Shown: positions 4,006 through 54,937 of the stretch, in pieces
Position numbering within the stretch: position 1 is the first letter of the stretch
Layout: every line of letters begins with the position of its first letter
Source: Heterodontus francisci
Taxonomy: Eukaryota
DNA: 64,000 nucleotides
NCBI RefSeq assembly: GCF_036365525.1
Contig: NC_090404.1
Coordinates: 11,250,550-11,314,549, forward strand
Reading direction: 5' to 3'
Notes under the pieces: model-generated
What the model saw: only the letters and a program-made list of their open reading frames with translations
What the model was told of the DNA's origin: nothing
Database searches by the model: none
Made by a program: the position numbers and the translations under genes

Positions 4006-4456
4006 ATGGGAATCCTCCTTGTTTTCACCCTGTGTGTCTGTTTACCCAGTGAGTACCGATCAAGCAAACTGACATTGTGTGGATTTAATATAAAGCTGCC
4101 CGAGTCCATCCGAATTACAGACACTGTCTCGGGTTTGAGCCTCGTTGTGTGGTTCGGTTCTGATGGCCCATTAAACTCTGTTTAATTTCCAGTCTCTTTC
4201 AGTCAGTCAGTGACACAGACCCCGGCAGCGGTGACCAGGAAGGAGTGTCAGTCTCTCACCATCACCTGTGTTTACAGTGGTGGTTATTGGGATTATAATT
4301 TTCTAAATGGACATTTCTTCAGACAGCGAATCTCGGGCAGAGGGCGATGTGTTGTGTCGGTGAATAAGGGAGAAACGTCATTTTCCCTGCGAATTCGGGT
4401 TGCGAGAGTTGAAGACACCGCCACCTATTACTGTAAAGCTGAGTACAGATACAGCA
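4006..4456 (+). CDS. NAR-TCR V segment, cluster 1 (leader exon 4006-4048, V exon 4193-4456)
   Basis: Leader MGILLVFTLCVCLP with GTGAGT donor; TTCCAG acceptor; V = SFSQSVTQTPAAVTRKECQSLTITCVYSGGYWDYNFLNGHFFRQRISGRGRCVVSVNKGETSFSLRIRVARVEDTATYYCKAEYRYS. VNAR hallmarks: no CDR2, RISxxGR, YYCKA, non-canonical FR1 Cys. Confidence 0.92.
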
Positions 4457-4494
4457 CACAGTGATGGGCCTCGGCTTCCCGCGGTACAAAAACT
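4457..4494 (+). other. V RSS (CACAGTG - 22 nt - ACAAAAACT)
   Basis: Heptamer 4457-4463, spacer 4464-4485, nonamer 4486-4494. Confidence 0.95.
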
Positions 4495-4810
4495 CTTTCT
4501 GCAGATTACCACAGAAACAAATGGAAAAGTATAGTTAATCCGTTAAACCTCACATTTCCGCCTCGCACCGTCTCTCCCACAGTCTAGTTTATAATGAGAT
4601 AGAATTATTTCCATTAACATCTTGACTTTTATAAATGTCGAGTATGCGCGAGTGTCTTTCCCAGGATCGGTGTCAGTGAATGGAGATTGGGAATGACTGA
4701 TTCCAGTTCCAAATCACTAACACCAGATGAGATCCTGATCTAACAGCTGGAACCGGGAACCACAGTTCCCGCCGTTAAACTATTGTCCCCACATCTCTCC
4801 AAGTACCGGG

Positions 4811-4880
4811 GGATTTGATGCTGTCTTGAAGCACAGTGTTTACTGGAATGGCCACAGTGGGTGAGACCTGAACAAATACC
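4811..4880 (+). other. NAR-TCR D segment, cluster 1 (coding 4839-4852, TTTACTGGAATGGC) flanked by 12/12 RSSs
   Basis: GGATTTGAT-12-CACAGTG on the 5' side; CACAGTG-12-ACAAATACC on the 3' side. Confidence 0.9.
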
Positions 4881-5199
4881 ACTGTACAATTAAAATAGAA
4901 ACTCACCGGGCTGGGGTCCCGAATTGTAGGGCTGATGTTATCATCGCTGTAATATAGTTTAATTTTTCAGTAATTTCCTCCTTTTTGTTATCTCTGACAT
5001 TTTTCTCTGTTTATATGAAGCGCCATTTCCGGCCTGTGTTCCTGGGCCATGTTACCAAGAGCTTAGAATCTCATAAAGAATAGTTTGAACCGACAGAGAC
5101 TGTGAAACATGGAATATTGTCCATTCGTCTAAAATCCCTGGAATAAGTGGGCAGCGTCGACTATCTGGTGATGTGTGACCGGCAGATTGAGGTGTCGGT

Positions 5200-5287
5200 T
5201 GTTCTTGTACCGTGGTGACTGAGAGCGATGTCACTGTGCAGATTAGATACGTGGATGGATCCGGGATGGTAGTGACTGTCACAGCGG
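5200..5287 (+). other. NAR-TCR J segment, cluster 1 (23-RSS 5200-5238, coding 5239-5287)
   Basis: TGTTCTTGT-23-CACTGTG, then QIRYVDGSGMVVTVTA and a phase-1 GTAAGT donor. DGxG is a NAR-type J motif. Confidence 0.92.
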
Positions 5288-7859: not shown

Positions 7860-9500
7860 GTTGAAGCCCCCACTCTACCATTACCATCAAGCCAAGAGAC
7901 CAACCCTGGTTCAATGAAGAGTGCAGAAGGGCATGCCTGCAGCAGCACCAGGCATACCTCAAAATGAGGTGTCAACCTGGTGAAGCTACAGCACAGAACT
8001 ATCTGCGTGCCAAACTGTGCAAGCAGCATGGATAGACAAAGCGAAGCCCCCATAACACATGAATAGGATGGGAATAGAGGGATACGGTTCCCGGAAGTGC
8101 AGAAGGTTTTAGTTTAGGCAGGCATCAAGATCGGCGTAGGCTTGGAGGGCCGAATGGCCTGTTCCTGTGCTGTACTGTTCTTTCTTCTTTGTTCTTTGAA
8201 TGGCCGGTTCCTGTGCTGTACTGTTCTTTGTTCTTGTTCTTTGTAACCAGCGTATCAGATCTAAGCTCTGCAATCCTGAAACATGCAGCCGTGAATGGTG
8301 GTGGACAATTAATCAACTAACTGGAGGAGGTGGCTCCACAAATATCCCCATCCTCAATGATGGGGGAGCCCAGCACATCAGTGCGAAAGATAAGGCTAAA
8401 GCATTTGCAACAATCTTCAGCCAGAAGTGCCGAGTTGATGATCTAACCTGCAATGTGGAAAATTGCCCAGGAATGTCCTGTACACAAAAAACAGGACATG
8501 TCCAACCCAGCCAATTACCACCCTATCAGTATACTCTCAATCATCAGTAAAGTGATGGAAGGTGTCATCAACAGTGCCATCAAGCAGCACTTGCTTAGCA
8601 ATAACCTGCCAGGGCCACTCAGCTCCTGACCTTATTACAGCCTCAGTTCAAACATGGACAAAGGAGCTGAACCCAAGAGGTGAGGTGATAGTGGCAGCCC
8701 TTGACATCAAGGCAGCATTTGACCGAGTATGGCATCAATGAACCCCAGCAAAACTGAAGTAAATGGGAATCGGGGGAAACCCCTCCGCTGGCTAGAGTCA
8801 TACCTAGCACAAAGGAAGATGGTTGTGGTTGTTGGAGGTCAATCATCTCAGCTCCAGGACATCACTGCAGGAGTTCCTCACGGTAGTGCCCTAGGCCCAA
8901 CCATCTTCAGCTGCTTCATCAATGACCTTCCTTCAATCATAAGGTCAGAAGTGGGCATGTTCGCTGATGATTGCACAATGTTCAGCACCATTCGCGACTC
9001 TTCAGATACTGAAGCAGACCATGTAGAAATGCAGCAAGACCTGGACAATATCCAGGCTTGGGCTGATAAGTGGGAAGTAACATTCGCGCCACACAAGTGC
9101 CAGACAATGACCATCGCCAACAAAAAAGAATCTAACCATCTCCCCTTGACATTCAACGGCATTGCCATCCCTGAATCCCTCACAATCAACATCCATTGAC
9201 CAGAAACTGAACTGGAGTAGCAATATAAATACCGTGGCTACAAGAGCAAGTCAGAGACTAGGAATCCTGCAGCGAGTAACTCACCTCCTGACTCCCCAAA
9301 GCCTGTCCACCATCGACAAGGCACAAGTCAGGAGTGTGATGGAATACTCTCCACTTGCCTGGATGGGTGCAGCTCCAACAACACTCAAGAAACTAGGCAC
9401 CATCCAGAACAAAGCAGCCCACTTGACTGGAACCCCATCTGCAAATATTCACTCTCTCCACCACCTATGCAGAGTGGCAACATTGTGTACCTTGCAATAA
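7860..9500 (+). mobile_element. CR1-group (L2/Crack-like) LINE RT fragment, with a nested CR1 3' end at ~8058-8243
   Basis: ORFs 8729-9199 and 9162-9500 contain GVPHGSALGPTIFSCFIND, MFADDC and QQDLDNIQAWADKW; frameshifted and internally deleted. Confidence 0.9.
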
Positions 9501-9771
9501 ACACCAACATTCCATTTATTAGTCTAAGCCCTCTTTCTAATTCTGTGACGCAGAGCGGTTTTGTTGGAATAGGGTTTGGCAACTAAGACTTTCAGAGTGT
9601 CGTCATTGGTTGTACATTAGGCTGAGCAACACCGCTGTCGCTGACACATTTATTGAAGGCAGGTTTCAGTGGGAAAGCAGCAATTGCGACATTAGCAAAA
9701 GGCTACAGTGGAAAGGTTCGGTTTCAGTGCGGGAGAAGTAGAATGGCACGTAGAAGATCAGAGACTAAAGA

Positions 9772-9844
9772 AACGCAACGTGGGGCTCGAACCCACGACG
9801 CCGAGATTAACAGTCGCATGCTCTGCTGCTTGAACTAGCCGGGC
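9772..9844 (-). pseudogene. tRNA-Lys(CTT)-derived pseudogene (anticodon now GTT)
   Basis: GCCCGGCTAGTTCAAGCAGCAGAGCATGCGACTGTTAATCTCGGCGTCGTGGGTTCGAGCCCCACGTTGCGTT closely follows vertebrate tRNA-Lys-CTT; acceptor and anticodon stems are mispaired. Confidence 0.8.
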
Positions 9845-10394
9845 ACGCCAAATGGCTGCTCTACATCTTATACAACAGCAAGGCAATTCTTGGTTTCCAC
9901 CTGGTGTCTCAGTCTGCTCCGGATTCCAAGGTGACTGGCAGAAGCCCGACGCTGCCATGCATTCCACTCAATCGTCAATAACATCATTCACATCTTCCAC
10001 TTCTTAGCTGCACGTCCTTCCAAACATTGCCACCCATTTTACTTAGGATTTCTTCCGGCATTTACCAACATTGTGCCCTCATCCTGAAATGAGATTCTCT
10101 TCAGTAACAAGGAAAGTCTCAGCACACTGAGCTTCTTCTCTCGTGAAACAGAAGGCTGAGAGATGACCTGATAGAATTTGGAAAGCTTTGTCCTTGGTTC
10201 ATCAGGGAATCGAGGTGAAATTTATTCACTCAGCTTCAGTTTACAACTGCTGAATCTGCATCAAACACATCATGAGATATTTATCGATTACACATTGAGA
10301 TGTCATTCTAAAGATCAGATTTTGGCATCTGCTGAATCAGCGTTTTATCCGCCCCCCTCTCACTCTCTCTCTCTCTCTGTCTCTTTGTCATTAG

Positions 10395-10500
10395 ATTACA
10401 GCAGTGACTACGCTTCAAATGTACTTCATTGGCTGCAAAACGCTTTGCGATGTCTTGACATCGTGAAAGGTCTTGCTTAAATGTAAAGCTTCCTTTCTGT
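10395..10500 (+). mobile_element. Deu-SINE/L2-type 3' tail fragment
   Basis: CAGTGACTACGCTTCAAATGTACTTCATTGGCTGCAAAACGCTTTG...GTGAAAGG; partly duplicated at ~10800. Confidence 0.55.
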
Positions 10501-10859
10501 CTGTCAATCTTAATGAAGAACGATATGGAATTGTGAAATATATCTGCTCCTTTCAGTGTCTGCTCCACTTTCTGTCTATCTGTCATTCCCTATTTCTCTG
10601 TATGTGTCCCTCTCCGTCTATATGCCTGCCTCTTTTTCCCTCTCCCCGATCGTCCTCCGCTTTGAAGCATACGGGCACGAAGTCACTTGTGTGCATTCAC
10701 CTCCTTGGGGAATTAAGCCACACGGAGACACATAGAGTGACACATTGAAAGACACAGTCACATACACTGAGAGTGAGGGAACGCTAAGAGAGACAGACTG
10801 CAGTGACTACGCTTCAAATGTATTTCATGAAACTCACCTTCCCAGCTGCCACCTCGCTC

Positions 10860-11165
10860 GCACGACTGGAGGAAGTTACAATGAGAGGAAGGGGCGAAGA
10901 CATGGAGCTATTTAAAAGCAATAGCGAAAATTTTAATATCAACTCGTTGCTTAACCGGCAGGCAATATGGGCCAGTGAGCAGAGAAGTGATGGATGATCG
11001 GAACTTGGTGCAAGTTAGGACAGAGGTAACAGAGGTTTGGATGACCTCACGTTTACAAGTGATAGAATGTGGTTGGCCGGCCAGGTGTGCATTAGAATGG
11101 TCAAACCTAGAGGTAAAGAAGGCCTGAATGAGGATTGTTACAATAGATAAGCTGAGACACGGGTG
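10860..11165 (-). mobile_element. L2-clade LINE C-terminal fragment
   Basis: ORF 10908-11183 LIQAFFTSRFDHSNAHLAG...ITSLLTGPYCLPVKQRVDIKI resembles the L2 motif LIHAFVTSRLDYSN...LHWLPVKQRIDFKI. Confidence 0.75.
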
Positions 11166-11169
11166 TTGT

Positions 11170-14100
11170 TTTTTTTTATTCATTCGTGGGACGTGGGCGT
11201 TGCTGGCTGGGCTAGCATTTATTGCCCATCCCTACTTGCCTTTGTGAAGGTGGTGGTGAGCTGCCATCTTGAACTGCAGCAGTCCTTGCAGTGTAGGTAC
11301 ACCAACAGTGTTGTTAGGAATGGAGTTCCAGGATATTAACCCAGCGACAGTGAAGCAATGGCCATATAGTTCGAAGTCAGGATGGTTTGTGGATTGGACA
11401 GTAACTTGCAGGTGTTGGGGTTCCTATACATCTGCTGCCCTTGTCCTTCTAGGTGGTAGAGGTCATAGGTTTGGAAGGTGCTTTCGAAGGATCCTTGGTG
11501 AGTTTCTGCAATGCATCTTATAGATGGCGCACACTACTGCCACTGCGCATCGGTGGCAGAGCGACTGAATGTTGAAGGTTGTAAATGGGGTGCCAATCAA
11601 GCAAGCTGCTTTGTCCTGGATGGTGTCGAGCTTCTTGAGTATCTGAGGAGTTGCGAATGGTGCTGAAGATTAGGCAATTATCAGCGAACTGCTTCCGACC
11701 TTATGATGAGGGAAGATCATTAATGAAGCAGCTGAAGCTAGTTGGGCCTAGGACACTACCCTGAGGAACTCCCACAGTGATGTCCTGGGACTGAGATGAT
11801 TGACCTCCAACAACCACAGCATTTTCTTTTGCGCTATGTACGACTCCAACCAACCGAGAGTTTTCCCTGGATTCAATTGACTCCAGTTTTGCTAGGGCTC
11901 CTTGATGCCATTCTTGGTCAAATACAGCCTTGATATGCAGGGCAATCACTCTCATCTCACCTCTGGAAATTCAGCACTTTTGTCCATGTCTGGACCAAGG
12001 CTGTAATGAGGTCTGGAGCTGAGTGGCCCTGGTGGACCACAAACTGAGCATTAGTGAGCAGGTTATTGCTGAGCAGGTGGCGCTTGATAGCACTGTCGAC
12101 GACACCTTCCATAACTTTGCTGATGATCGGGAAAAGACTGATACGCCAGTAATTGGCAAGGTTGGATTTGTCCTGCGTTTTGTGCACAGGACATACCTGG
12201 GCAATTTTCCACATTGGCGGGTAGATGCCGGTGTTGTAGCTGTACTTGAACAGCTTGGCTAGAGGCGTGGCTAGTTCTGGAGCACAAGTCTTCAGTACTA
12301 TAGCCGGAATATTGTCAGGGCCCATAGCCTTTTCAGTATCCAGTGCCTTCAGCCGTTTCTTGATATCACGTGGAGTGAATCGGATTGGCTGAAGACTGGC
12401 ATCTGTGATGCTGAGGAGCTCAGGAGGATGCCGAGATGGATCATCCACTTGGCATTTCTGGCTGAAGATGGATGCTAATGCTTCAGCCTTGTGTTTTAAA
12501 TTGATGTGCTGGGCTCTGCCATCGTTGAGGATGAGGATATTTGTGGAGTTTCCTCTAAATGTCGGTTGTTTAATTGTCCACCACCATTCTCGACTGGATG
12601 TGGCAGAACTGCAAAACTTAGATCTGATCCGTTGGTGGAGGGATCACATATCTCTGTCTATCACATGCTGCTTCTGCTGTTTGGCATTCAGATAGTCCTG
12701 TGTTGTAGCTTCACCAGGTTGACACCTCATTGTGAGGTATGCCTGGTGCTGCTCCTGGAATGCCCTTCTGCACTCTTCAATGAACCAGGGTTGATCCCCC
12801 GCTTGATAGTAATGGTAGAGTCGGGGATATGCCGAGCCATGAGGTTACAGATTGTAGTTGAATACAATTCTGCTGCTGCTGATGGCCCACAGCACCTCAT
12901 GGATGCCCAGTTTTTCATTTCTAGATCTGTTCGAAATCTATCCCATTCAGCTCGGTGGTAGTGCCACACAACACGATGGAGGGTATCCTCAATGTGAAGA
13001 CGGGAATTTGTCTCCACATGGACCATGCGGTGGTCACTCCTACCAATACTGTCATGGACAGATGCATCTGTGACAAGCAGATAAGTGAGGACAAGGTCAG
13101 GTCAGTTTTTCCCTCTTGTTGGTTTCCTCCCTCACCAGCTACCACAGACCCAGTCTAGCAGCTATGTCCTTTAGGACTCGGCCACCTCGGCCAGTGGTGC
13201 TACCGAGCCAGTCCATGTGATGGGCATTGAAGTCCCCCACCGAGAGTACATTTTTTGTCCTTGCTATCCTCAATGCATCTTCCAATTGGTGTTCAACGTG
13301 GATACGTACTGATTCATCAGCCGAGGGGTGAGGGGAGGTAGGTAGTAATCCGCAGGAGGTTTCCTTGCCCATGTTTGATCTGATGAAATGAGACTTCATG
13401 GGGTCCGGAGTCGATGTTGAGGACTCCCAGTGCAACTCCCGCCTGACTGTATACCACTGTGCCGCCACCTCTGGATGACAGACCCAAGGATGGTGATGGA
13501 GGTGACTGGGACATTGTCTGCAAGGTATGATTCCGTAAGTATGGCTATGCCAGGCTGTTGCTTGACTGGTCTGTGGGACAGCTCTCCAATTTTGGCACAA
13601 GTCCCCAAATGTTAGTAAGGAGGACTTTGCAGGGTCCACACGGCTGGGTTTGCCATTGTCTTTTCCTGATGGTCCGTCGGGTTTCGTTCCTTTTCTTAGA
13701 CTTTTTAGCAGGTTGAGACGACTGAGAGGCTTGCTAGGCCATTTCAGAGGGTATTTAAGAGTCAACCACTTTGCTGTTGGTCTGGAGTCATATGTGGGCT
13801 AGACCAGGTAAGAACGGCACTTGAGTGAACCAGATGGGTTTTTTACAACAATCGACAATGGTTTCATGGTCACCACTAGCCTAGCTTTTTAATTCCAGAT
13901 TTATTAATTAAAAATTCAAGATTTATTAATTGAATTCAAATTCCCCATCTGCCGTGGTGAGATTCGAATCCTTGTCCCGAGAGCATTAGCCTGGAGCTCT
14001 GGGTTACTAGTCTGGTGACATGGGGCGGCACAGTGGCGCAGTGGTTAGCATTGTGGTTAGCAGCCTCACAGCTCCAGCGACCCGGGTTCAATTCTGGGTA

Positions 14101-14400: not shown

Positions 14401-14727
14401 ACCCCCTCCACACCTTGCTCCGCCCAACCTTATTGAAGTAAAACGGATGGTTTAAAAGGAAACGATAATTAGTTTCCATTAAAATAGCCACTAGATCTTA
14501 ATTTGGAAATGACAAAGTTTGGCACAGGAGAGAGCAAACACTTTCGTTGAAAAGGCTGCTGAAGTGCAGATGCGTTGCCTGTTCTCTCAGTGTGCATTGC
14601 AATGCTTAATCACTTTGCTTCATGTGGTAAAATTCTAAAATAGTTGAAAACATATTAATGAAGAATGCATGTACTTCCTGTCTCCGTGCTCTGTGTCACT
14701 GTGTGTCTGTAATCCCCACCGTGTTCA

Positions 14728-14766
14728 GGTTTTTGTTCAGCTCTCTCCGTGCTCTGTATCACTGTG
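14728..14766 (-). other. Consensus 23-RSS of the supporting V
   Basis: CACAGTG (14766-14760) - 23 nt - ACAAAAACC (14736-14728). Confidence 0.97.
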
Positions 14767-15072
14767 CTGTGCGCCGACTCAGTGCACAGTAATAAACAGC
14801 GGAGTCGCTCAGTTGTAGTTTGGCGCTGTTTAACCGGCTGATTTTCTCGGCAGGATCGAGAGAAGCAGCAATTCGTCCCCCGGCTGCATCTTCTTTATTC
14901 TGCTCTCCTGAAGTGTATCTCTGAAGCAGGTATTTCGGAGCCTGCCCTGGGGACTGATGGTACCAGTGTACTGTGTACTGACAGAACCCTGAATATTCGC
15001 AGCTTAAAGTAACCGTGTCACCGGCAGCAGAGGTCTGTTGAGGTGGATTCTGGGACACCATTGAACTGGAAT
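14767..15072 (-). CDS. TRDV: Leaderless supporting TCR-delta V segment of the NAR-TCR cassette
   Basis: CTGCAG acceptor in phase with J2; DSSSMVSQNPPQQTSAAGDTVTLSCEYSGFCQYTVHWYHQSPGQAPKYLLQRYTSGEQNKEDAAGGRIAASLDPAEKISRLNSAKLQLSDSAVYYCALSRRT. Has an extra CDR1 Cys; no leader exon found between it and J2. Confidence 0.92.
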
Positions 15073-17650: not shown

Positions 17651-18679
17651 ATCGCAGTCCTTCCCTCTATGAACTTCACCTCCAACCTGATGTCGGATTG
17701 GCTGGAGATCGTCCAATACTTGATTTCTTGTTGATTCCAAACGGACTTCCCTCCAGTTCACTCGGGTGCTCCTGTTGCCCTTTATGAAAAGATTAATACC
17801 TCACCCTCACTCGCTCACTTTCCAGTGCAGTTTCAATGAACAGTTACCAGGGAGACAGATAAATTACTGCAATCCGATCTCTCAAACATCGACATTCAAT
17901 ATGGAGAAGTCTCCACAGTTCGAAACTTTCACATTTCAGTCCGGGGACGGAAAAGGGGGGAAATGATTGCTTATATGGAGGCAACTGGAATAAATGTCAA
18001 GTAAAATACAACCATTTTTAGTCACTAATTGCCGATAACTAAAATGTTATCTGGACCTCCAACAGGACCTCCGTCTCGAAAGCTGGCGTCCTGTGCTGCC
18101 ATTTTACTGCTGCTGCAGGTGTCGAACGGGCCGCTGCAGATATCACACCGGCCCCTGTAGTGTTCACACTCGGGGAACCTCATTCACAATACCCGGCTCG
18201 GACTGCAATCTCCTGCCCAGAAGAAAGCTCTGTGACCCCGCTCCTGTGCTCACAGGGACATTCACAGTTAACACCGGGAGTGGAGGTCGGTTTATCAACA
18301 ATCTGCACCAGTTGAAAGCAATTAGTAGTGAGAGGGAGGGACGGTGGAGATGGAGAGAGAGAGAGAGAGAGAGAGTCGGGGATGGTGATGGGATCCCCCG
18401 AGCACCCTGTTAAACCACTGATGGTCCAGGTTGGCTCCGCTCCCACTCCCTCCTCAATCTGCCTGGTCCATCACTTCTGGCCTCTCCTTTCTCTGAATTC
18501 ACACTCGGATGCGACGCGTGGTTTATAATTTGCTCCCGACTCTGAAATTCCTATCGAAAAGCTCCATTAGAAACCCGCTCTGTTTTAGTTTGAAGCGGAT
18601 TAAGGTGATACTGATCATAATAATAAAGTGGACATTAACCAGGACAGTCTGTAACATGACGGCGTTTGGAGTCACTTAC

Positions 18680-18767
18680 CGGCTGTGACCGTCACCACCG
18701 TCTCTGATCCATCCACAGAACCATACACCACAGTGCCACCGCACTCAGTCAGCCCAGTACAAGAAAC
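18680..18767 (-). other. NAR-TCR J segment, cluster 2 (23-RSS 18767-18729, coding 18728-18680)
   Basis: Nonamer GTTTCTTGT - 23 - CACTGTG, then VYGSVDGSETVVTVTA and a phase-1 GTAAGT donor. Confidence 0.92.
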
Positions 18768-19090
18768 GACGGGCACCTCAATCTGCCGGCTGCACATCAC
18801 CAGGTAGTCGGCGCTCCCCAATTATTCCAGGGGGTTTCGACCAATAAACAATATTCCATGTTTAACGGTCCCTGACGGTTCAAACTGTTCTTTTTGAGAC
18901 TCTGAGCTCTTAGTAAAATGGTCCAGGAACAAGGGCCGGCGATGGGCGCCTCACATAAACAGAGAAAATACAAAGAAAGATAAATGAAAGGAGGAAATTA
19001 CAACAAAATCAAACCATATTGCAGTTATAAGAACATCAAACCTACAATTCAGGATCCGTCCCAGTGGAATTTAAATTTTAATTGGACAGA

Positions 19091-19118
19091 GGTATTTGTT
19101 CAGATCTCATTCACCGTG
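19091..19118 (-). other. 12-RSS at the 3' end of the fused V-D of cluster 2
   Basis: CACGGTG (19118-19112) - 12 nt - ACAAATACC (19099-19091), homologous to the 3' D RSS of cluster 1. Confidence 0.93.
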
Positions 19119-19607
19119 GCTTTTCCCCAAGTTAATCTGTACTCAGCTTTACAGTAATAGGTGGCGGTGTCTTCAACTCTCACATCCCGAATTTCCAGCG
19201 AAAATGTCTTTTCCGCCTTATTCAAGGACACAACCAATCGCCCTCCGCTGGAGATCCGCTCCTGCTTTGTCCCGGTCTGGGATTGTCTGAAAAAATATCC
19301 ATTTTGAAAGTAATAACCCCTATAATGACCATAGTAAACACAGGTGATGGTGAGAGACTGACACTCCTTCCTGGTCACCGCTGCCGGGGTCTGTGTCACT
19401 GACTGACTGAAAGAGCCTAGAAATTAAACAGAGAGAGTTTAATGGGCCATCAGAGCCGAACCACACAACGAGGCTAAAACCCGAGACAGTGGCTGTAATT
19501 CGGATGGACTCGGGCAGCTTTATATTAAATCCACACAATGTCGGTTTGTTTGATCGGTACTCACGGGGTAAACAGACACACAGGGTGAAAACAAGGAGGA
19601 TTCCCAT
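19119..19607 (-). CDS. NAR-TCR V segment, cluster 2, pre-joined in frame to its D (leader 19607-19565, VD exon 19416-19119)
   Basis: Leader MGILLVFTLCVCLP; exon SFSQSVTQTPAAVTRKECQSLTITCVYYGHYRGYYFQNGYFFRQSQTGTKQERISSGGRLVVSLNKAEKTFSLEIRDVRVEDTATYYCKAEYR-LTWGK, followed directly by a D-type 12-RSS. Confidence 0.92.
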
Positions 19608-21814: not shown

Positions 21815-23303
21815 TTTTTTTAAATTCATTCATGGGATGTGGGCGTCGCTAGCCAGGCCAGCATTTATTGTCCATCCCTAATTGCCCTTGAGATGGTGGT
21901 GGTGAGCTGCCTTCTTGAACCACTGCAGTCCGTGTGGGGTAGGTACACCTACAGTGCTGTTAGGAAGGGAGTTCCAGGATTTTGACCCAGCGACAGTGAA
22001 GGAACGGCGATATAGTTCCAAGTCAGGATGGTGTGTGACTTGAAGGGGAACATGGTGTTCCCATGCATTTGCTGCCCTTGTCCTCCTAGTTGGTAGAGGT
22101 CGCGGGTTTGGAAGGTGCTGTCTAAGGAGCCTTGGTGCATTGCTGCAGTACATCTTGTAGATGGTACACACTGCTGCCACTGTGCGTCGGTGGTGGAGGG
22201 AGTGAATGTTTGTTGATGGGGAGCCAATCAAGCGGGCTGCTTTGTACTGGATGGTGTCAAGCTTCTTGAATGTTGTTGGAGCTGTAACCATCCAGGCAAG
22301 TGGAGAGTATTCCATCACACTCCTGACTTGTGCCTTGTAGATTGCGGACAGGCTTTGGGGAGTCAGGAGATGAGTTACTCGCCGCAGGATTACTAGCCTC
22401 TGACCTGCTCTTGTAGCCACGGTATTTATATGGCTACTCCAGTACAGTTTCTGGTCGATGGTAGCCCCTCGGATGTTGATAGTGGGGGATTCAGCGATGG
22501 TAATGCCATTGAATGTCAAGGGGAGATGGGTAGATTCTCTCTTGTTGGAGATGGTCATTGCCTGGCACTCGTGTGGCGTGAATGTTACTTGCCACTTATC
22601 AGCCCAAGCCTGAATATTGTCCAGGTCTTGCTGCATTTCTACATGGTCTGCTTCAGTATCTGAGGAGTCGCGAATGGTGCTGAACATTGTGCAATCATCA
22701 GTGAACATCCCCACTTCTGACCTTATGATTGAAGGAAGGTCATTGATGAAGCAGCTGAAGATGATTGGGCCTCGGACACTACCCTGAGGAGCTCCTGCAG
22801 TGATGTCCTGGAGCTGAGATGATTGATCTACAACAACCACAACCATCCTCCTTTGCACTAGGTATGACTCGAGCCAGCGGAGGGTTTACCCCCTGATTCC
22901 CATTGACTCCAGTTTTGCTAGGGCTCCTTGATGCCATACTCAGTCAAATGCTGCCTTGATGTCAAGGGCAGTTACTCTCACCTCACCTCTTGAGTTCAGC
23001 TCTTTTGTCCAGGTTTGAACCAAAGCTGTAATGAGGTCAGGAGCTGACCCAAACTGAGAAGGTTATTGGTAAACAAGTGCCTATTGATGGCACTGTTGAT
23101 GACACCTTCCATCACTTTACTGATGATTGAGAGTAGACTAATGGGGTGGTAATTGGCCAGGCTGGACTTGTCCTGCTTTTTATGTCCAGGACATACCTGG
23201 GCAATTTTCCACATTGCAGGGTAGATGCCAGTGTTGCAGCTGTACTGGAACAGCTTGGCTAGGGGCGCAGCAAGTTCTGGAGCACAGGTCTTCAGTACTA
23301 TTG
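21815..23303 (-). mobile_element. 5'-truncated CR1-group LINE (same family as 11170-14400), nested in an older CR1 3' fragment
   Basis: 326-aa ORF 21878-22858 with RT and C-terminal motifs; same 3' tail. Confidence 0.9.
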
Positions 23304-23924
23304 ATAATTACTTGAGAAAGAAAGATTTTCAAAGCTTTGGAGGACTGGAGATTGGAACTGGTTGGATAGCTCTTTCAAAGAGCTGCCAGGATGGGCCGAA
23401 TGGCCTCCTTCTGTGCTGTCAAATTCCACGATTCAATGAATTTCAATTGCATCCATCAACAGTTTTGTAATTGCTTTATTGAAGATGCTTTTGATGACAT
23501 TAGTATATTACAGGTTAACAGTAACGACGTTATATAATGTCATGGTAAAACTGTAGATATAAAATGTCACCTGAACACATTAAGCATTTTAGTAACAGCT
23601 TGGGCAAAGTGACTTGACTCTAATTTCGGAATCAATAGATTGCAGATTTCACCTCAGCTTCAGAACCTGAGTATATTAAACAGGCTACCAAGCGGTGCGC
23701 TGCTGAAAGGGCACTATCTTTCCAGGGACAATCTGAAACAATAAGCCCAAATGACCCCACACCATGTCCTGGTCAACATTCCTCCCTTTAACCGAGAACA
23801 CCAAAAACATGTTGATGGGAATTGACAGATAAGCTCTATTGTTGATGTTTATGTGCGCAAATTGGCCACATTCATCTCTAATTAGATACACTTTAATAAG
23901 TTGGGAGATCCCGGACAGGGTGAC

Positions 23925-26110
23925 AGAGTCATAGAGTTATACAGCACAGAAACAGGCCCTTCGGACCACCGTGTCCATGCCGGCCGTCAAGCACCTATCT
24001 ATGCTAATCCCATTTTCCAACACTTGCTCCGTAACCTTGTATGTTATGGCGTTTCAAGTGCTCATCTAAATACTTCTTAAATGTTGTAAGGGTTCCTGCC
24101 TCTACCAACCCTTCAGGCAGTGCGTTCCAGATTCCAACCACCCTCTGGGTGAATTTTTTTCCCCTCAAATCCCCTATAAACCTCCTTCCCCTTATCTTAA
24201 ATCTATGCCCCCTGGTTATTGACACCTCCACTAAGGGTAAAAGGTGCTCTCTATCTATCCTACTATGCCCCTCATAATTTTGTATACCTCAATCAGGTCC
24301 CCCCCGCTCCCCCCACTCCCTCAGCCTTCTCCGCTCTAAGGAAATCAACCCTAGCCTATCCAATCTCTCTTCATAGCGGAAATGCTCCAGCCCAGGCAAC
24401 ATCCTGATGAATCTCCTCTGCACCCTCTTCAGTGAATCACATCCTTCCTATAGTGTGGTGACCAGAACTGTACACAGTACTCCAACTGTGGCCAAACTAG
24501 CATTTGATACAGCTCCATCATAACCTCCCTGCTCTTATATTCTACGCCTCGGCTAATAAAGGCAAGTATCCCGTCGTCCTTCCTAACCACTTTGTCTACA
24601 TGTGCTGCTGCCTTCAGTGATCTATGGACAAGTACACCAAGGTCCGTCTGACTCTCTGTACTTCCTACGGTCCCACCATCCATTGCATATTCACTTGCCC
24701 TGTTAGTCCTCCCAAAATGCATCACCTCACACTTCTCAGGATTAAATTCCATTTGTCACTGCTCTGCCAATCTTACCAGCCATTCTATATCGTCCTGTAA
24801 TCTAAGACTTTCCTATTCACTGTTTACGACACCACCAATTTTCGTGTCATCTGCGAACTGACTGATCATACTTCCTATATTCAGGTCTAAATCATTAATG
24901 TATACTACAAACAGCAGAGGTCCCAGCACCAATCCCTGCTGTACACCACTGGTCACAGGCTTCCACTCACAAAAACAACCCTCGACCATCACCCTCTGCC
25001 TCCTGCCACTAAGCCAATTTTGGGTCCAATTTGGCATATTGCCCTGGATCCCATGGGCTCTTACCTTCTTAACCAATCTCCCATGTGGGATCTTATCAAA
25101 AGCCTTTCTGAAGTCCATGTAGACGACATCAACTGCTTTCCCCTCATCTACACATTTAGTCACGACCTCGAAAAATTCAGTCAAGTTTGTAAGGCATGAT
25201 CTCCCCCTGACAAAGCTATGCTGACTATCCCTGATTAATCGCTGCCTCTCCAAGTGGAGAATAATCCTGTCTTTCAGAAAATTTTTCCAATAGTTTCCAT
25301 ATCACTGATGTTAGACTCAGCGGCCTGTAGTTACCTGGTTTATCCCTGCTACCCTTCTTGAATAATGATACCACATTCACTGTCCTCCAGTCTTCTGATA
25401 CCTCTCCTGTGGCCAGAGAGGATTTGAATATTTGTGTCAGAGCCCCTGTTATCTCCTCCCTTGCCTCACATAACAGCCTGGAGTACATCTCATCTGGGCC
25501 TGGGGATTTATCCACTTTTAAGCCCGCTAAAACAGGTAATACTTCCTCCCTTTCAATGTTAATATGTTCAAGTCTATCACAGTCCCCTTCCCTGATCTCT
25601 ACACCTACATCGTCCTTCTCCATAGTGAACACAGATGAAAAGTAATCATTTAAAACCTCACCTCTGTCCTCCAGCTCCACACACAGATTGCCACTTTGGT
25701 CCCTAATGGGCCCTACTCTTTCCCTGGTTATCCTCTTGCCCTTAATATACTTATAAAATGCCTTGGGATTTTCCTTTATCTTGCCCTCCAGTGTTTTTTC
25801 ATGCCCCCTCTTCGCTCTCCTAATTATTTTTTTAATTACCCCCCACACTACACTTTCTATTTTCCTCCAGTGCCTCCGCTGTTTTCAGACCTCTGAATCT
25901 ACCGTAAGCCTCCTTTGTTTTCCTTATCCAATCCTCTATATCCCTTGACATCCAGGTTCCGTGAACTTGTTGGTCCTACTCTTCACCTTTACGGGAACAT
26001 TTTGGCTCTGAACTCTCACTATTTCCTTTTTGAATGATTCCCACTGGTCTGATGTAAACTTTCCTACAATTAGCTGCTCCCAGTCCACTTTGGCCAGATC
26101 CTGCTTATCA
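23925..26110 (-). mobile_element. CR1-clade LINE, 5'-truncated and frameshifted
   Basis: ORFs 25225-25848, 24813-25253, 24429-24752 and 24004-24231: KSPGPD, DVVYMDFRKAFD, QFADDTK, QLEYCVQFWSP. Confidence 0.92.
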
Positions 26111-28892: not shown

Positions 28893-30681
28893 AAACCCTA
28901 AGGCTTTCTATAGGTATATCAGGAATAAAAGAATGACTAGAGTTAGATTAGGGCCAATCAAGGATAGTAGTGGGAAGTTGTGTGTGGAATCAGAGGAGGT
29001 AGGGGAAGTGTTAAATGAATATTTTGCGTCAGTATTTACAGTAGAGAAAGAAAATGTTGTCGAGGAGAATACTGAGATTCAGGCTACTAAGCTAGATGGG
29101 ATTGAGGTTCACAAGGAGGAGGTGTTAGCAATTTTGGAAAGTGCGAAAATAGATAAGTCCCCTGGGCCAGATGGGATTTATCCTAGGATTCTCTGGGAAG
29201 CTAGGGAGGAGATTGCAGAGCCTTTGTCCTTGATCTTTATGTCATCATTGTCGACAGGAATAGTGTCGGAAGACTGGAGGATAGCAAATGTTGTCCCCTT
29301 GTTCAAGAAGGGGAGTAGAGACAGCCCTGGTAATTATAGACCTGTGAGCCTTACTTCGGTTGTGGGTAAAATGTTGGAAAAGTTTATAAGAGACAGGATT
29401 TATAATCATCTTGAAAAGAATAAGTTCATTAGAGATAGTCAGCACGGTTTTGTGACGGGTAGGTCGTGCCTCACAAACCTTATTGAGTTTTTCGAGAAGA
29501 TGACCAAACAGGTGGATGAGGGTAAAGCAGTGGATGTGGTGTATATGGATTTCAGTAAGGCGTTTGATGGTAGGCTATTGCAGAAAATACGGAAGTATGG
29601 GGTTGAAGGTGATTTAGAGCTTTGGATCAGAAATTGGCTAGCTGAAAGAAGACAGAGGGTGGTGGTTGATGGCAAATTGTTCATCCTGGAGTTTAGTTAC
29701 TAGTGGTGTACCGCAAGGATCTGTTTTGGGGCCACTGCTGTTTGTCATTTTTATAAATGACCTGGAAGAGGGTGTAGAAAGGTGGGTTAGTAAATTTGCG
29801 GATGACACGAAGGTCGGTGGAGTTGTGGATAGTGCCGAAGGATGTTGTAGCGTACAGAGGGACATAGATAGGCTGCAGAGCTGGGCTGAGAGATGACAAA
29901 TGGAGTTTAATGCGGAAAAGTGCGAGGTGATTCACTTTGGAAGGAGTAACAGGAATGCAGAGTACTGGGCTAATGGGAAGATTCTTGGTAGTGTAGATGA
30001 ACAGAGAGATCTTGGTGTCCAGGTGCATAAATCCCTGAAGGTTGCTACCCAGGTTAATAGGGCTGTTAAGAAGGCATATGGTGTGTTAGCTTTTATTAGT
30101 AGGGGGGTCGAGTTTCGGAGGCACGAGGTCATGCTGCAGCTGTACAAAACTCTGGTGAGACCGCACCTGGAGTATTGCGTGCAGTTCTGGTCATCGCATT
30201 ATAGGAAGGATGTGGAAGCTATGGAAAGGGTGCAGAGGAGATTTACTAGGATGTTGCCTGGTATGGAGGGAAGGTCTTACGAGGAAAGGCTGAGGGACTT
30301 GAGGTTGTTTTCGTTGGAGAGAAGGAGGAGGAGAGGTGACTTAATAGAGACATATAAGATAATCAGAGGGTTAGATAGGGTGGATAGTGAGAGTCTTTTT
30401 CCTCGGATGGTGATGGCAAACACGAGGGGACATAGCTTTAAGTTGAGGGGTGATAGATATAGAAAAGATGTCAGAGGTAGTTTCTTTACTCAGAGAGTAG
30501 TAGGGGCGTGGAACGCCCTGCCTGCAACAGTAGTAGACTCGCCAACTTTAAGGGCATTTAAGTGGTCATTGGATAGACATATGGATGAAAATGGAATAGT
30601 GTAGGTCAGATGGTTTCACAGGTCGGCGCAACATCGAGGGCCGAAGGGCCTGCACTGCGCTGTAATGTTCTAAAAAAAAAA
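28893..30681 (+). mobile_element. Relatively young 5'-truncated CR1 (HER1-like) LINE
   Basis: ORFs 28933-29703, 29666-29896 and 29900-30604 form a near-continuous RT and C-terminus; A-tail at ~30672; the empty paralogous site is visible at ~56215-56240. Confidence 0.93.
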
Positions 30682-31199
30682 GATACATTAAACGTGACAT
30701 TACTCAATCCCGTTGGGAATAGCGTTCGTGTATTGTTCCTAAAACGTCTCAAGCTCGTATCATTCACTTGTTTGAGCTTTTATGTGCTGCATATTGTGCA
30801 TTCTTCATCAAACCTTGCGAATGTGAAAACTTGTTAATGTGTTCAGGTTATTTTTAATAATATTAAACACGGTACTTTATTTACACCATTCTCTTTCCTG
30901 AGTATGTGTGCCGTGTTCTGGTCTTTGTTCAATGTCCTATTCACGGTTTGCAACTCACTATCGCAGCCTCTCTGAAACTTTTTCTATTAGTATTTTGTAT
31001 TCAGTCGGTCTTCTGACCATCTGGCCCGGTGCCCAGCCACGTCACACTTGTCCTTACAGATTATTAGTCCATTAATCATTGTTTATCAGCTTCTAATTCT
31101 GTCCTGAAAACGACATCTTAGAACCCTATTATGTTGTGGATTCTTAGCGTTAATATGTGTAAGTGTCTTTAACATTGAAAAATGACTAAAATGTTAAAC

Positions 31200-33270
31200 T
31201 TAAATTAGTGTAACAATATGGGCATGAAAGCTGAGCTATCTGAAGTGAACTGGGTTGCTAGGCTAGGAGATAGATCAATAGAGAAGCAGTGGCAGACATT
31301 CAAGGGGATATTTCAGAATATCAGGATAAGTATATTCCTACTAGAAAGAAAAATTCTAAGGGGAGGATCCACTATCCGTGGTTAACTAAAGAAGTGAAGG
31401 AAAGCATCAAACTTAAGAAAACGGCTGATAATTGTGCAAAGATGAGTGGCAGGTCAGATAATTGGTCAGAATATAAAGAACGGCAGAGAATGACTAAAAG
31501 GTTAATCAGGAGAACGAATTAGAATAGGAGAGGAAGCTAGCTAGGAATGTAAAAATGGATAGCCAAGAGTTTCTACAGGTATTTAAAAAGGAAAACAATA
31601 ATATGAGCGTTAGCCCTCTAGAGAGTGATAATGAGGAGTTAATAGTAGATAATAAGGAAATGGCGGATGAAATGAACAAATAGTTTGCTTCTGTCTTCAC
31701 TATAGCTGATACAAAAAAAATTCAATAATAGCTGTAAATCAGGAGGTGGAAGGATGAGAGGAACTTGGTGAAATTACAATCACCAGGGAAGGAGTACTGA
31801 GCAAACTGATGGAGCTGCGGGCAGACAAGTTCCCGGGTCCTGATGGGCTTCATCCTCAGGGCTTCAAAGAGGTGGATAATGAGGTAGTAAATGCGTTGGT
31901 GTTAATTTTTCATAATTGGCTACATTCTGGAAAATAGCAAATATAGCCCCTCTATTCATGAAGGCGGGTGGGGGGGGGGGGTGCAAAAAACACATAACTA
32001 TAGGCCAGTTCACATAACGTCTGTTGTGGGGAAGGTGTCAGAGTCCAGCATTAAGGAGGCTATAGCGGGGCACTTAGAAAAACTCAAGGTAATCGGGAAT
32101 AGTCAGCATGTGAGAGGGAGATCATGTTTACCCAATTTATCGAAGTTCTTTGAAGGAGTAACATGTGCCATGGATAAAGGGAAGCCTGTTGACGTACTGT
32201 ACTTGGATTTCCAGAGACATTTGACAAGGTGCCACATCAAAGGTCATTACGCAAAGTAGGAGCTCATGGTGTCGGGGGTAACATATTAGCACGGATAGAA
32301 GATTGGCTGGCAGGACAGAGAGTCTGCATAAATGGGTCTTTTACCAATTGGAAGGACGTGATGGGTGGAGTCCCACAAGGGTCTGTGCTGGGGCCTCAAC
32401 TTTTTAAAATTTATATCAATGACTTAGATGAGGGAAGCGATGGTATGGTAGCTAAATTTGCAGATGACACAAAGATAGGTAGGAAAGTATGTAGTAAAGA
32501 GGACATAAGGAGGTTGCAGACCGACTTAGATCGGTTGAGTGAGTGGGCAAAAATCTGCCAGATGGAGTATAATGTGGGAAAATGTGAAGCTGTTCACTTT
32601 GGCAGGAAGAATAAAAAAGCAGAGTATTACTTAAATTAAGAACTCAGGATCTAGGTGTTCTCGTGCATGAGTCACAAAAATTAGTATGCAGATACAGCAA
32701 GTAATAAAGAAGGCTAATGGAATGCTATCCTTTATTAAGAGAGGATGGTATGCTTCAGTTATACAGGGTATTAGTGAGATCACATGTCGAATACTGTGTG
32801 CAGTTTTGGCTCCTTATTTAAGGAAGGATGTGAATGCACTGGAGATGGTTCAGAGAAAGTTTACTAGATTGATACCTGGAATGAGCAGGTTGTTTTATGA
32901 GGAAGGGTTGGACAGACTGGGCTTGTTTTCACTGGAGTTTAGAAGAGTGAGGGGAGACTTGATTGAAGTATATAAGATCTTGAATGGTCTAGATAAGGTG
33001 GGTGTGGAAAGGATGTTTCCTCTTGTGGGTGAGTCCAGAACTAGGGGGCATTGTTTTAAAATTAGAGGTAGTCCTTCCAGGACAGAGATGAGGAGAAATG
33101 CTTTCTCTCAGAGGGTTGTGCGACTTTGGAATTCTCAGCCTCAGAAGGTGGTGGAGACAGATTCATTGAATAATTTTAAGGCAGGTGTAGGTAGACATTT
33201 GTTAGGCAAGGAATCAAAGATCACTGGGGTCAATGGGACGGTGGAATTCGAGACAAAAACAGATCACCCA
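31200..33270 (+). mobile_element. Decayed CR1 LINE
   Basis: ORFs 31289-31522, 31981-32259, 32229-32639 and 32686-33366 with [10 protein letters not shown] and KFADDTK. Confidence 0.88.
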
Positions 33271-33274
33271 CGAT

Positions 33275-35838
33275 TTTTGTTTATTATTCATTCATGGGAT
33301 GTGTGTGTCACTGGCTATGCCAGCATTTATTGCCCATCCCTAATTGCCCTTGAGAAGGTGTGGTGAGCTGCCTTCTTGAACCTCTGCAGTTCATTTGGGG
33401 TAGGTACACCCACAGTGCTTTTAGGAAGGGAGTTCCAGGATTTTGACCCAGCGACAGTGAAGGAATGACAATATAGCTCCAAGTCAGGATGATGTATGAC
33501 TTGGACGGGAACTTGCAGGTGGCGATGTTCCCATGCATTTACTGCTCTTGTCCTTCGAGGTGGTAGAGGTCGCGGGTTTGGAAGGTGCTGTCGAAGGAGC
33601 CTTGGTGCATTGCTGCAGTGCATCGTGTAGATGGTACATACTGCTGCCATTGTGCGTCAGTGGTGGAGGGAGTGAATGTTTGTGGATGGGGTACCAATCA
33701 AGCGGGCTGCTTTGCCTCAGATGCTGTCGAGCTTCTTGAGTGTTGTTGAAGCTGCACTCATCCAGGCAAGTGGAGGGTATTCCATCACACTCCTGACTTG
33801 AGCCTTGTAGATAGTGGACAGGCTTTGGGGAGTCAGGAGGTGAGTTACTCGCTGCAGGATTCCTAGCCTCTGACCTGCTCTTGTAGCCACGGTATTTATA
33901 TGACTACTCCAGTTCAGTTTTTGGTCAATGGGAGCCCCTAGGATGTTGATAGTGAGGGATTCAGCGATGGCAAAACCATTGAATGTCAAGGAGAGATGGC
34001 TAGATTCTCTCTTGTTTATTTATTTATTTGGAGATACAACACTGAAACAGGCCCTTCGGCCCACCGAGTCTGTGCCGACCAACAACCACCCATTTATACG
34101 AATCCTACATTAATCCCATATTCCCTACCACATCCCCATCATTCTCCTACCATGTACCGACACTCGGAGCAATTTATAGTGGCCAATTTACCTATCAACC
34201 TGCAAGTCTTTGGCTGTGGGGGGAAATAGGAGCACCAGAAACCCACGTGGTCACAGGGAGAATTTGGAAACTCCACACAGGCAGTACCCAGAACTGAACC
34301 CGGGTTGCTGGAGCTGTGAGGCTGCAGTGCTAACCACTGCGCCACTGTGCCTCCCTGATTGGCACTTATGTGGCACAAATGTTACTTGCCACTTATCAGT
34401 CCAAGCCTGGATATTGTCCAGGTCTTGCTGCATTTCTACATGGACTGCTTCAGTATCTGAGGAGTCACGAATGGTGCAGAACATTGTGCAATCGTCAGCG
34501 AACATCCCCAATTCTGACCTTACGATTGAAGGAAGGTCATTGATGAAGCAGCTGAAGATGGTTGGGCCTAGGACACTACCCTGAGAAACTCCTGCAGTGA
34601 TGTCCTGGAGCTGAGATGATTGACCTCCAACAACCACAGCCATCTTCCTTTGTGCTAGGTATGACTCCAACTGGCAGAGAGTTTTCCCCCTGATTCCCAT
34701 TGACTCCAGTTGTGCTAGGGCTCCTTGATGCCATACTCGGACAAATGCTGCCATTATGTCAAGGGCAGTCATTCTCACCTCACCTCTTGAGTTCAGCTCT
34801 TTTGTCCAGGCTGTAATGAGGTCAGGAGCTCTGTGGCCCTGGCGGAACCCTGACTGAGCATCATTGAGTAGGTTACTTCTAAGCAACTGTTGCTTGATGG
34901 CACTGTTGATGACACCTTCCATCACTTTACTGATGATTGAGGGCAGACTGATGGGGCGGTAATTGGCCAGGTTGAACCTGTCCTGCTTCTTTTGTACAGG
35001 ACATACCTGGGCAATGTTCCACATTTCCGCGTAGATGCCAGTGTCGTAGCTATACTGGAACAGCTTGGCTAGGGGTGCATCAAGTTCTGGAGCACAGGTA
35101 TTGAGTACTATTGCCGGAATATTGTCAGGACCCAGAGCCTTTGCAGTATTCAGATCCTTCAGTCGTTTCTTGACATCATGTGGAGTGAATTGTATTGGCT
35201 AAAGTGTGGCATCTGTAATGCTGAGGACTTCAGGAGGGAGCCGAGATGGATCAACAACTCGCCACTTCTGGCTGAAGATTGTTGCAAATGCTTCTGCCTT
35301 ATCTTTTGCGCTGATATGCTGGGCTCCCCCATCATTGAGGATGGGGATATTTGTGGAGCCACCTCCTCCAGTTAGTTGTTTAATTGTCCACCACCATTCA
35401 CAGCTGGGTGTGGCAGAACTGCAGAGCTTAGATCTGATCCGTTGTTTATGGGATCGCTTTGCTCTGTCTATTGCATGCTGCTTATGCAGGTTGGCATGCA
35501 AGTAGTCCTGTGTTGTAGCTTCACCAGGTTGACACCTCATTTTGAAGTATGCCTGGTGCTGCTCCTGGCATGCCCTACTGCGCTCTACATTGAAGCTGGG
35601 CTGGTCTCCTGGCTTGATGGTAATGGTAGAGTGGGGAATATGCCGGTCCATGAGGTTAAAGATTGTGGTTGAGTACAATTCTGCTGCTGCTGATGGCCCA
35701 CAGCGCCTCTTGGATGCCCAGATTTGCATTGCTAGATCTGTTCAAAATCTATCCCATCTAGCACGGTGATAGTGCCACACAACACGATGGACGGTGTCCT
35801 CTATGTGATGACGGGACTTTGTCACCACAAGGACAGTG
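33275..35838 (-). mobile_element. CR1-group LINE (family of 11170-14400), 5'-truncated, with a nested HE1 SINE
   Basis: ORFs 35199-35729, 34251-35024, 33717-33989 and 33327-33650; same 3' tail. Confidence 0.9.
34015..34356 (-). mobile_element. HE1-type V-SINE nested in a LINE
   Basis: Homologous to 14021-14380; (TAAA)n tail. Confidence 0.85.
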
Positions 35839-35840
35839 AC

Positions 35841-35935
35841 CCGAAGAAGGGTCACTGACCCGAAACGTTAACTCTGCTTCTCTTTTCACAGATGCTGCCA
35901 GAGCTGCTGAGTGATTCCAGCATTTCTTGTTTTTA
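35841..35935 (+). mobile_element. Penelope-like terminal fragment with a hammerhead-like motif
   Basis: CCGAAGAAGGGTCACTGACCCGAAACGTTAACT...CACAGATGCTGCCAGA, matching the end of the GIY-YIG element at 57845-58590. Confidence 0.7.
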
Positions 35936-54464: not shown

Positions 54465-54937
54465 ATGGATCTTCCTTGTTTTCACCTCGTGAGTACCGAT
54501 CAAACAAACCGACATTGTGTGGATTTAATATCAACTGCCCGAGTCCATCCGAATTACAGACACTGTCTGGGGTTGTAGCCTCGTTGTGTGGTTCGGCTCT
54601 GATGGTCCATTAAACTCTCTCTGTTTAATTTCCAGACTCTTTCAGTCAGTCAGTGACACAGATCCCGGCAGCGGTGACCAGGAAGGAGTGTCAGTCTCTC
54701 ACCATCACCTGTGTTTACAATGGTGGTTATTGGGATTATACTTTCCTAAATGGACATTTCTTCAGACAAACCCAGACCAGGACACAGCGGGAGCGGATCT
54801 CCAGCGGAGGCCGATTTGATGTGATTTGAATAAGGCAGAAAATACATTGTGGCTGGAAATTCACCTATTACTGAAAAGCTAAATACAGGTACAAGAACAC
54901 ACAGTGATGGGCGTCGGCTTCCCGTGGTACAAGATCT
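54465..54937 (+). pseudogene. NAR-TCR V pseudogene, cluster 3 (leader 54465-54488, V exon 54636-54899, RSS 54900-54937)
   Basis: Leader shortened to 24 nt (phase lost). V reads SFSQSVTQIPAAVTRKECQSLTITCVYNGGYWDYTFLNGHFFRQTQTRTQRERISSGGRFDV, then a frameshift, an FR3 deletion and second Cys changed to TGA. RSS CACAGTG-22-ACAAGATCT. Confidence 0.92.

Follow-up and report, generated by a model that had tools for sequence, protein, structure and literature searches.

Germline joining of the VD-J type is a textbook feature of the immunoglobulin (Ig) clusters of cartilaginous fish, and was first seen in horn shark IgH. The type III IgNAR cluster of the nurse shark carries germline-fused D1-D2 segments and is reported to be expressed preferentially early in life. 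RAG-driven joining in the germ line is thought to reshape shark antibody loci and to yield receptors that depend less on somatic recombination. In the Ig clusters such RAG-mediated joining, partial VD-J joining included, is established, and RAG acting in germ cells is held responsible for partial and full joins alike (PMC2193156, PMC4279169). The classical partially joined (VD-J) IgH genes are those of the IgM clusters of Heterodontus francisci, while the mechanism has been studied in the NS4 light chains of the nurse shark (Lee et al. 2000, PMC2193156; PMC4279169); expression of the joined horned shark IgH genes was not detected (PMC2193156). Outside the cartilaginous fish, the opossum VH3.1 gene is described, in papers that cite Wang and Miller 2012, as a partially germline-joined VH (PMC7615758, PMC5931798). 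Germline-joined V segments of T-cell receptors (TCRs) are represented by V-mu-j of marsupial TCR-mu (PMC7615758, PMC3457774) and by a pre-joined, expressed V-J gene in the TRD locus of the newt Pleurodeles waltl, reported in a 2025 paper (PMC12698447).

The NAR-TCR cassette belongs to a doubly rearranging TCR-delta system (Criscitiello et al. 2006), whose features are taken here as they are listed in PMC1845163. For the N-terminal NAR V that source lists a separate leader, a Cys within the a-b loop and a WYRK motif that has lost its canonical Trp; D and J segments belonging to the cassette, with RSSs, follow downstream (PMC1845163). According to the same listing, the J donor is spliced to a leaderless supporting TCR-delta V that has a CDR1 Cys and its own 23-RSS, and the product is expressed as a three-domain chain spliced to TCR-delta C (PMC1845163). 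A split VDJ organisation of NAR-TCR is known from the nurse shark and the elephant shark (PMC1845163). In a search of the literature that mentions NAR-TCR, made without the primary NAR-TCR papers, we found no description of a joined NAR-TCR segment, and an earlier report is possible. Here we describe a NAR-TCR mini-cluster of H. francisci in which V and D are already fused in the genome, and for which RAG-type V(D)J recombination in the germ line is the probable origin. It would extend germline joining from the Ig clusters to the shark TCR alpha/delta locus, and there to the distal, antibody-like domain of NAR-TCR.

The window, by which we mean the whole stretch of 64,000 nucleotides that was analysed, is TCR alpha/delta DNA of Heterodontus francisci and contains three NAR-TCR V-D-J mini-clusters that are paralogues of one another. 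The plus strand carries cluster 1 at 4006-5287 (leader ATG at 4006, J end at 5287); cluster 2 is on the minus strand at 19607-18680 (leader 19607-19565, J end at 18680), and cluster 3, a pseudogene cluster, on the plus strand at about 54465-55741. By self-BLAST, the identity of cluster 2 to its paralogues is 87-88% across V and 77-79% across D-J, and upstream of it about 1 kb of DNA is 87-89% conserved with them. When heptamer and nonamer sequences of the window itself served as the pattern for a scan, six RSS-like sites came up, every one at a V, D or J border, with about 0.1 expected per spacer class from 100 shuffles.

Several other features of the region deserve mention. Compared with clusters 2 and 3, the V of cluster 1 (4193-4456, plus strand) has lost 24 nt (8 codons) in frame from its FR2/C' region, and this cluster, convergent in orientation and facing cluster 2, has no supporting V-delta downstream. 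The V of cluster 3 (54465-54899, plus strand) is a pseudogene with a short leader, a 26-nt deletion in FR3 and a stop in place of the second canonical Cys codon; the 5' D heptamer of this cluster is degenerate. Probably another V pseudogene is a leaderless TCR-type V fragment at 35923-36180 on the minus strand, 33% identical to the supporting V-delta, which a repeat insertion cuts short in FR3. The space between the clusters (8200-13800, 21900-25900 and 28900-35700) is filled by several LINE-type reverse-transcriptase fragments, on either strand. A 14.5-kb minisatellite (37193-51702), in which a 28-bp unit recurs about 518 times with 85% matches, interrupts the TCR V region midway, and an intact 317-aa open reading frame for a multi-finger C2H2 zinc-finger protein occupies 61589-62542 on the plus strand within this antigen-receptor region.

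Cluster 2 opens with a leader exon (19565-19607, minus strand, ATG at 19607) that is identical to the N-terminus of NCBI model P0012. The 148-nt leader intron (19417-19564, minus strand) is kept in the genome, and an RNA contig of the NAR-TCR V family skips 148 nt at 19415/19564. Next comes a fused V-D exon. Its V-derived part (19136-19416, minus strand; Pfam V-set, E 3.9e-08; aligned to clusters 1 and 3) is of the NAR type in translation: its a-b loop has the extra Cys (in KEC, ahead of the first canonical one), it reads FFRQ where WYRQ is expected (Phe for the canonical Trp), and a Cys codon lies at 19153-19151. The remaining 17 nt (19119-19135, minus strand) are derived from D; they read LTWGK in frame with V, and align to the D of cluster 3 at 55283-55297 and of cluster 1 at 4839-4852. 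The 3' 12-RSS of D is intact at 19091-19118 on the minus strand (heptamer 19118-19112, 12-nt spacer, nonamer 19099-19091), and the 3' RSS of D in cluster 1 has exactly the same nonamer. The translated frame stays open through ...YYCKAEYR and then LTWGK, with the first stop inside the RSS spacer. A first-pass annotation of this DNA had placed the feature at 19091-19416, which runs exactly from the start of the V exon to the end of the nonamer.

Downstream of the fused exon, the D-J part of the cluster is unrearranged, as the first-pass annotation had stated together with the open frame. The D-J spacer of 323 bp (18768-19090, minus strand) is unrearranged, 77-79% identical to the spacers of clusters 1 and 3, and tiled by exact read-derived contigs. 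It is followed by the J 23-RSS (18729-18767, minus strand; nonamer 18767-18759, 23-nt spacer, heptamer 18735-18729) and by the unrearranged NAR-J coding segment (18680-18728, minus strand), which ends in phase 1 at a GT donor (18679-18678). The remaining parts of cluster 2 thus obey the 12/23 rule, VD carrying a 12-RSS and J a 23-RSS. From NAR-J to the supporting V there is a repeat-filled intron of 3.6 kb, very high-copy between 15200 and 17500 (read depth in thousands). The supporting TCR-delta V exon (14767-15072, minus strand; Pfam V-set, E 5.4e-16) is leaderless, with an acceptor directly upstream, a CDR1 Cys and a 23-RSS at 14728-14766 on the minus strand; around this RSS (14678-14766), the heptamer and 19 nt of spacer are duplicated 63 bp downstream (26 nt, 92% identical). 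That cluster 2 alone has a supporting V-delta, another point of the annotation, is true within the window, where only 8 kb lie downstream of cluster 3. The cluster therefore has the leader and V features listed for NAR-TCR, its own D and J with RSSs, the D being fused to V, and a J donor facing a leaderless supporting V-delta that has the CDR1 Cys and 23-RSS; C-delta lies beyond the limits of the window.

The fusion itself is best seen against the two split paralogues. In self-BLAST and in a three-way alignment, cluster 2 is colinear with clusters 1 and 3 save for one gap of about 390 bp, whose limits are a point shortly ahead of the V coding end and the first base or so of D coding sequence; in self-BLAST, the step from 526 to 535 in the query corresponds to one of about 395 bp in the subjects. 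What cluster 2 lacks is present in cluster 1 at 4457-4838 (plus strand), where the RSS of V (heptamer, 22-nt spacer, nonamer) is followed by about 320 bp of spacer DNA and then by the 5' RSS of D (nonamer, spacer, heptamer), ahead of the D at 4839-4852 and its 3' 12-RSS at 4853-4880, and in cluster 3 at 54900-55282 (plus strand). These two intervals are 82% identical, and the window holds no third copy. The missing interval, and with it both RSSs, had been the core of the first-pass claim, and it held.

The edges of the gap also fall where that annotation had put them. The joint lies at 19136/19135, with one T assignable to either side. Measured against the V coding end of cluster 1, its left edge lies 6-7 nt inward, in agreement with the trimmed coding joint proposed earlier; against that of cluster 3 the distance is 9-10 nt. 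The right edge, said to match the 5' coding border of D, is 0-2 nt inside the D coding start. At the joint there is no remaining heptamer, there are no added bases and P nucleotides are absent. Cluster 2 thus resembles a germline-joined gene in that the interval and both RSSs are absent relative to split paralogues and the edges lie at coding ends, and its junction resembles a coding joint in its trimmed ends and lack of a heptamer. An origin as a processed retro-copy, or as retrotransposed cDNA, is ruled out by the 148-nt leader intron and the roughly 1 kb of homologous upstream DNA, both of which are kept, and by the unrearranged D-J.

Since the breakpoints lie at the coding borders, both RSSs are lost, the intron is kept, the parts are 12/23 compatible and a contig of single-copy depth carries the joint (see below), we regard cluster 2 as probably a germline V-D joint made by RAG-type V(D)J recombination in a NAR-TCR mini-cluster. 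The agent would be RAG, judging from the anatomy of the joint; P nucleotides, which would prove a hairpin intermediate, are absent. In the proposed sequence of events, the 22/23-RSS of V and the 5' 12-RSS of D would have recombined in the germ line, a signal-ended interval of roughly 390 bp would have been excised, and the coding ends, trimmed by 6-7 nt (V) and 0-2 nt (D), would have been ligated without added nucleotides and the product inherited. Left over would be the leader, its intron and a fused VD exon with the 3' 12-RSS of D. A thymocyte would then need one 12/23 step instead of two, to the NAR-J 23-RSS 390 bp downstream. Splicing at the J donor would then connect the VDJ exon with the leaderless supporting V-delta, 3.6 kb further downstream, for which a rearrangement of its own to a TCR-delta D/J is required. 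In the NAR CDR3, the N-terminal half would be germline-fixed, with diversity confined to the VD-J junction. Rearrangement of the cluster 2 VD to J is what the retained RSSs predict.

Whether the cassette contributes to the repertoire is a separate matter. The first-pass annotation had proposed an inherited RAG-type joint with one VD-to-J step left, which the anatomy and the contig support, and in addition a hard-wired CDR3 in use, which was pure inference. The main competitor of that second part accepts the joint as real and germline, and takes the cassette for a neutral relic or a decaying pseudogene that makes no contribution to the repertoire, much like the joined horn shark IgH clusters for which expression was not detected; to this we give somewhat under an even chance. 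Part of the case for it is the J of cluster 2 (18680-18728, minus strand), which reads DGSE rather than DGSG, with Glu at the second Gly of D-G-S-G, and which may be disabling. Clusters 1 and 3 have DGSG, and Gly occupies that position in 64 of 65 J-like motifs from 62 homologous gene models of at least 15 elasmobranch species, which leaves DGSE unique among the 65. On the other hand, non-canonical TRD J motifs are in use in a newt and in the axolotl (PMC12698447).

RNA counts on the same side. The same-sample RNA contigs that match the V exon show the leader splice, but with 6-7 mismatches to cluster 2 in 81 positions they derive from paralogues, and among the matches listed (the longest contigs, from one sample) there is no cluster-2-specific RNA contig. 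The state of clusters 1 and 3, damaged or orphaned, further suggests that this part of the locus is degenerating. Against decay stand the intactness of the rest of cluster 2, with an open V-D frame, the canonical pair of cysteines and the NAR-specific one, three remaining RSSs and the splice sites, the 87-89% conservation of its upstream DNA with the paralogues, and the narrow base of the RNA comparison, one sample and its longest contigs. Joined to J without trimming, VD would be 2 nt out of frame; only some junctions would be productive, as is usual.

A functional cassette is accordingly a doubtful proposition, although not a negligible one: cluster 2 would then encode a semi-invariant NAR-TCR delta chain, in whose antigen-binding single domain the first half of CDR3 is germline-fixed and whose assembly takes one recombination step fewer. 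Such a chain could belong to an innate-like gamma/delta receptor, perhaps favoured early in life in the way that germline-joined IgM1gj and NS4 are in nurse shark pups.

Some doubt also attaches to the agent of the deletion. Replication slippage, or end joining after a random break, might have removed the V-D interval with no involvement of RAG, and the lack of P nucleotides or any other positive hairpin hallmark and the single T common to both ends of the joint are what such an event could leave. We nevertheless hold it to be improbable. A cluster unit measures about 2.5 kb, yet one end is no more than 7 nt and the other no more than 2 nt away from a heptamer/coding border, a placement that random ends would reach with a chance of order 1e-5 (a rough estimate); both RSSs are gone whole, the heptamer is not retained and the frame is kept. 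The annotation had itself named a microhomology deletion unrelated to the RSS borders as the outcome that would count against it; at most one base is common to both ends, and the edges lie at RSS borders. A deletion between repeats is likewise disfavoured, because the V heptamer and the 5' D heptamer of cluster 1 read identically on the plus strand and recombination between identical heptamers would leave one of them, yet none remains. The tandem VDJ model and the Mustelus lead discussed below also point away from a chance deletion and towards RAG-type joining.

A joint in a reference genome could also be a somatic rearrangement captured from a lymphocyte, or a long-read assembly error, and every read-derived contig set that holds the stretch comes from one sample, probably the assembly's own. 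Contigs of this sample tile 17862-19164 with zero differences at a depth of 3.4-3.8. One of them (280 nt, in X1, on 18885-19164) crosses the joint with 0 mismatches and 0 gaps at depth 3.4, equal to that of the flanking single-copy contigs (3.0-3.8). This contig has 29 letters on the V side, just below a 31-letter rule of thumb, and ends where V becomes identical to the paralogues. It shows no branch at the joint, and an unjoined allele with the same D flank is therefore not visible, as it would force a branch; this individual would carry the joined form on both chromosomes, or else an unjoined allele escapes view at this low depth. A polyclonal T-cell rearrangement, moreover, would account for a very small share of the reads and its junctions would vary widely, and a germline D-J, the lack of N additions and an exact in-frame joint are atypical for a randomly captured read. 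A somatic or assembly artefact is on these grounds an unlikely source of the joint, and we assign it very little weight.

The joint is documented in one individual, and inheritance beyond it is what a germline event predicts; X24, a capture library and the sole run from another individual, has zero depth at the joint, and X5, a run from another species, covers only pieces of the V exon and leader, at about 90% identity. An RNA-guessed contig of the assembly sample has one difference (A to G) at 18915 in the D-J spacer, absent from the DNA contigs of that sample, and could stem from the other haplotype or from a closely related paralogue. Model P0012 ('T cell receptor alpha chain MC.7.G5-like [Heterodontus francisci]') is also derived from the public assembly of H. 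francisci; it is a model whose exon translations are identical to those of cluster 2 and which contains the VD read-through. The model reads on through the 3' heptamer and spacer of D and then jumps into J, which is an artefact of automatic annotation, and its name does not mark the joint.

It is scarcely credible that cluster 2 preserves an ancestral, never-split V-D exon into which clusters 1 and 3 gained an RSS-flanked element, an old 'relic' idea discussed for joined shark genes (PMC2193156), when Chiloscyllium, Hemiscyllium, Cetorhinus and others have split V ends whose RSS, spacer and nonamer are homologous, NAR-TCR has a split VDJ in the nurse shark and the elephant shark (PMC1845163), and V and upstream DNA of cluster 2 are 87-88% identical to those of its split paralogues. 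Translated in frame, the stretch of cluster 1 that comprises the V RSS, its spacer and nonamer matches the read-through tails of Chiloscyllium and Hemiscyllium V models, and because of this match and the split genes of nurse and elephant shark, the split V-D state is the ancestral one. Germline joining of a formerly split cluster is thus the reading we carry forward.

Other gene models offer further leads. Model P0011, an NCBI model from the same H. francisci chromosome, has one contiguous V-CDR3-J twice in tandem before a supporting V, which suggests a second, independent germline join in the NAR-TCR family. An open reading frame on an ENA contig (P0002) ends in V, about 10 nt and a read-through that fits a D 3'-type heptamer, 12-nt spacer and nonamer, and it has a junction motif in common with a Mustelus asterias model (P0034, LOC144483190) at 76% identity overall. 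These two may represent a second, older VD-joined lineage, or possibly a V with a variant heptamer and a 22-nt spacer; a homologue search with P0002 as query gave nothing new. If the cluster 2 cassette is functional, the motif common to these two would mean that VD-joined NAR-TCR genes have long been maintained in more than one shark order.

Models of about 234 aa with two V domains are many and come from at least 15 elasmobranch species. We considered these NCBI models (for example P0005, from the basking shark) as fully joined VDJ genes and rejected them: their 'CDR3' is RSS or heptamer read-through, the junctions being in-frame read-throughs of the V RSS or the J heptamer, so that the models are pseudo-spliced. 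Automatic NAR-TCR models in general (P0012, P0005, P0021, P0016 and others) render RSS read-through as coding and contain invented V-to-J introns, and for these reasons automatic shark NAR-TCR models are not usable as evidence of joined genes. Their names are misleading as well (TCR alpha MC.7.G5-like, Ig gamma-1-like, DSCAM-like).

Among known systems, the VD-J genes of horn shark IgH are a close counterpart of cluster 2: they come from the same species group and from cluster-type V-D-J units with 23/12-12/23 RSSs, and they likewise have V and D fused with trimmed ends and no N additions, the remaining RSS being compatible with J. Unlike them, cluster 2 is not an Ig gene; it lies within the TCR alpha/delta locus and feeds a leaderless supporting V-delta, and its product is predicted to form the N-terminal one of three domains in a TCR-delta chain. 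With a single D per NAR-TCR cluster there are only two junctions, and the joint in cluster 2 removes one of them. The IgNAR type III cluster offers the closest V family, a NAR-type V, and a partial join that restricts CDR3 in the same way; its join is D-D in an antibody locus, whereas that of cluster 2 is V-D in a TCR locus. Opossum VH3.1, as described in the papers that cite it, shares with cluster 2 a pre-joined V-D that keeps the 3' RSS of D, and still recombines with J, but it is a gene of a mammalian IgH translocon, neither a TCR gene nor a mini-cluster.

The comparison with other TCR genes reduces the novelty that the first-pass annotation had implied. While we found no joined NAR-TCR described in the papers mentioning NAR-TCR that we searched, as it had supposed, the VD-J joins of Ig and the joined genes of TCR-mu (PMC7615758) and newt TRD (PMC12698447) make the finding smaller than claimed. 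Marsupial TCR-mu resembles NAR-TCR in having an inherited joint in a TCR gene and, convergently, a three-domain chain, and the newt TRD gene is likewise a TCR gene with an inherited joint. The joins of both are complete (VDJ or VJ) and give an invariant domain, in contrast to the partial join of cluster 2. In marsupials the joined domain is the supporting, membrane-proximal V, probably made by retrotransposition, whereas in cluster 2 the joint lies in the distal, antigen-binding V, keeps the intron and is delimited by RSSs. The locus raises the question of T cells with a half-fixed NAR CDR3, and of when in life they would appear. After marsupial TCR-mu and newt TRD, cluster 2 would be a third, mechanistically different case of a germline-joined TCR gene.
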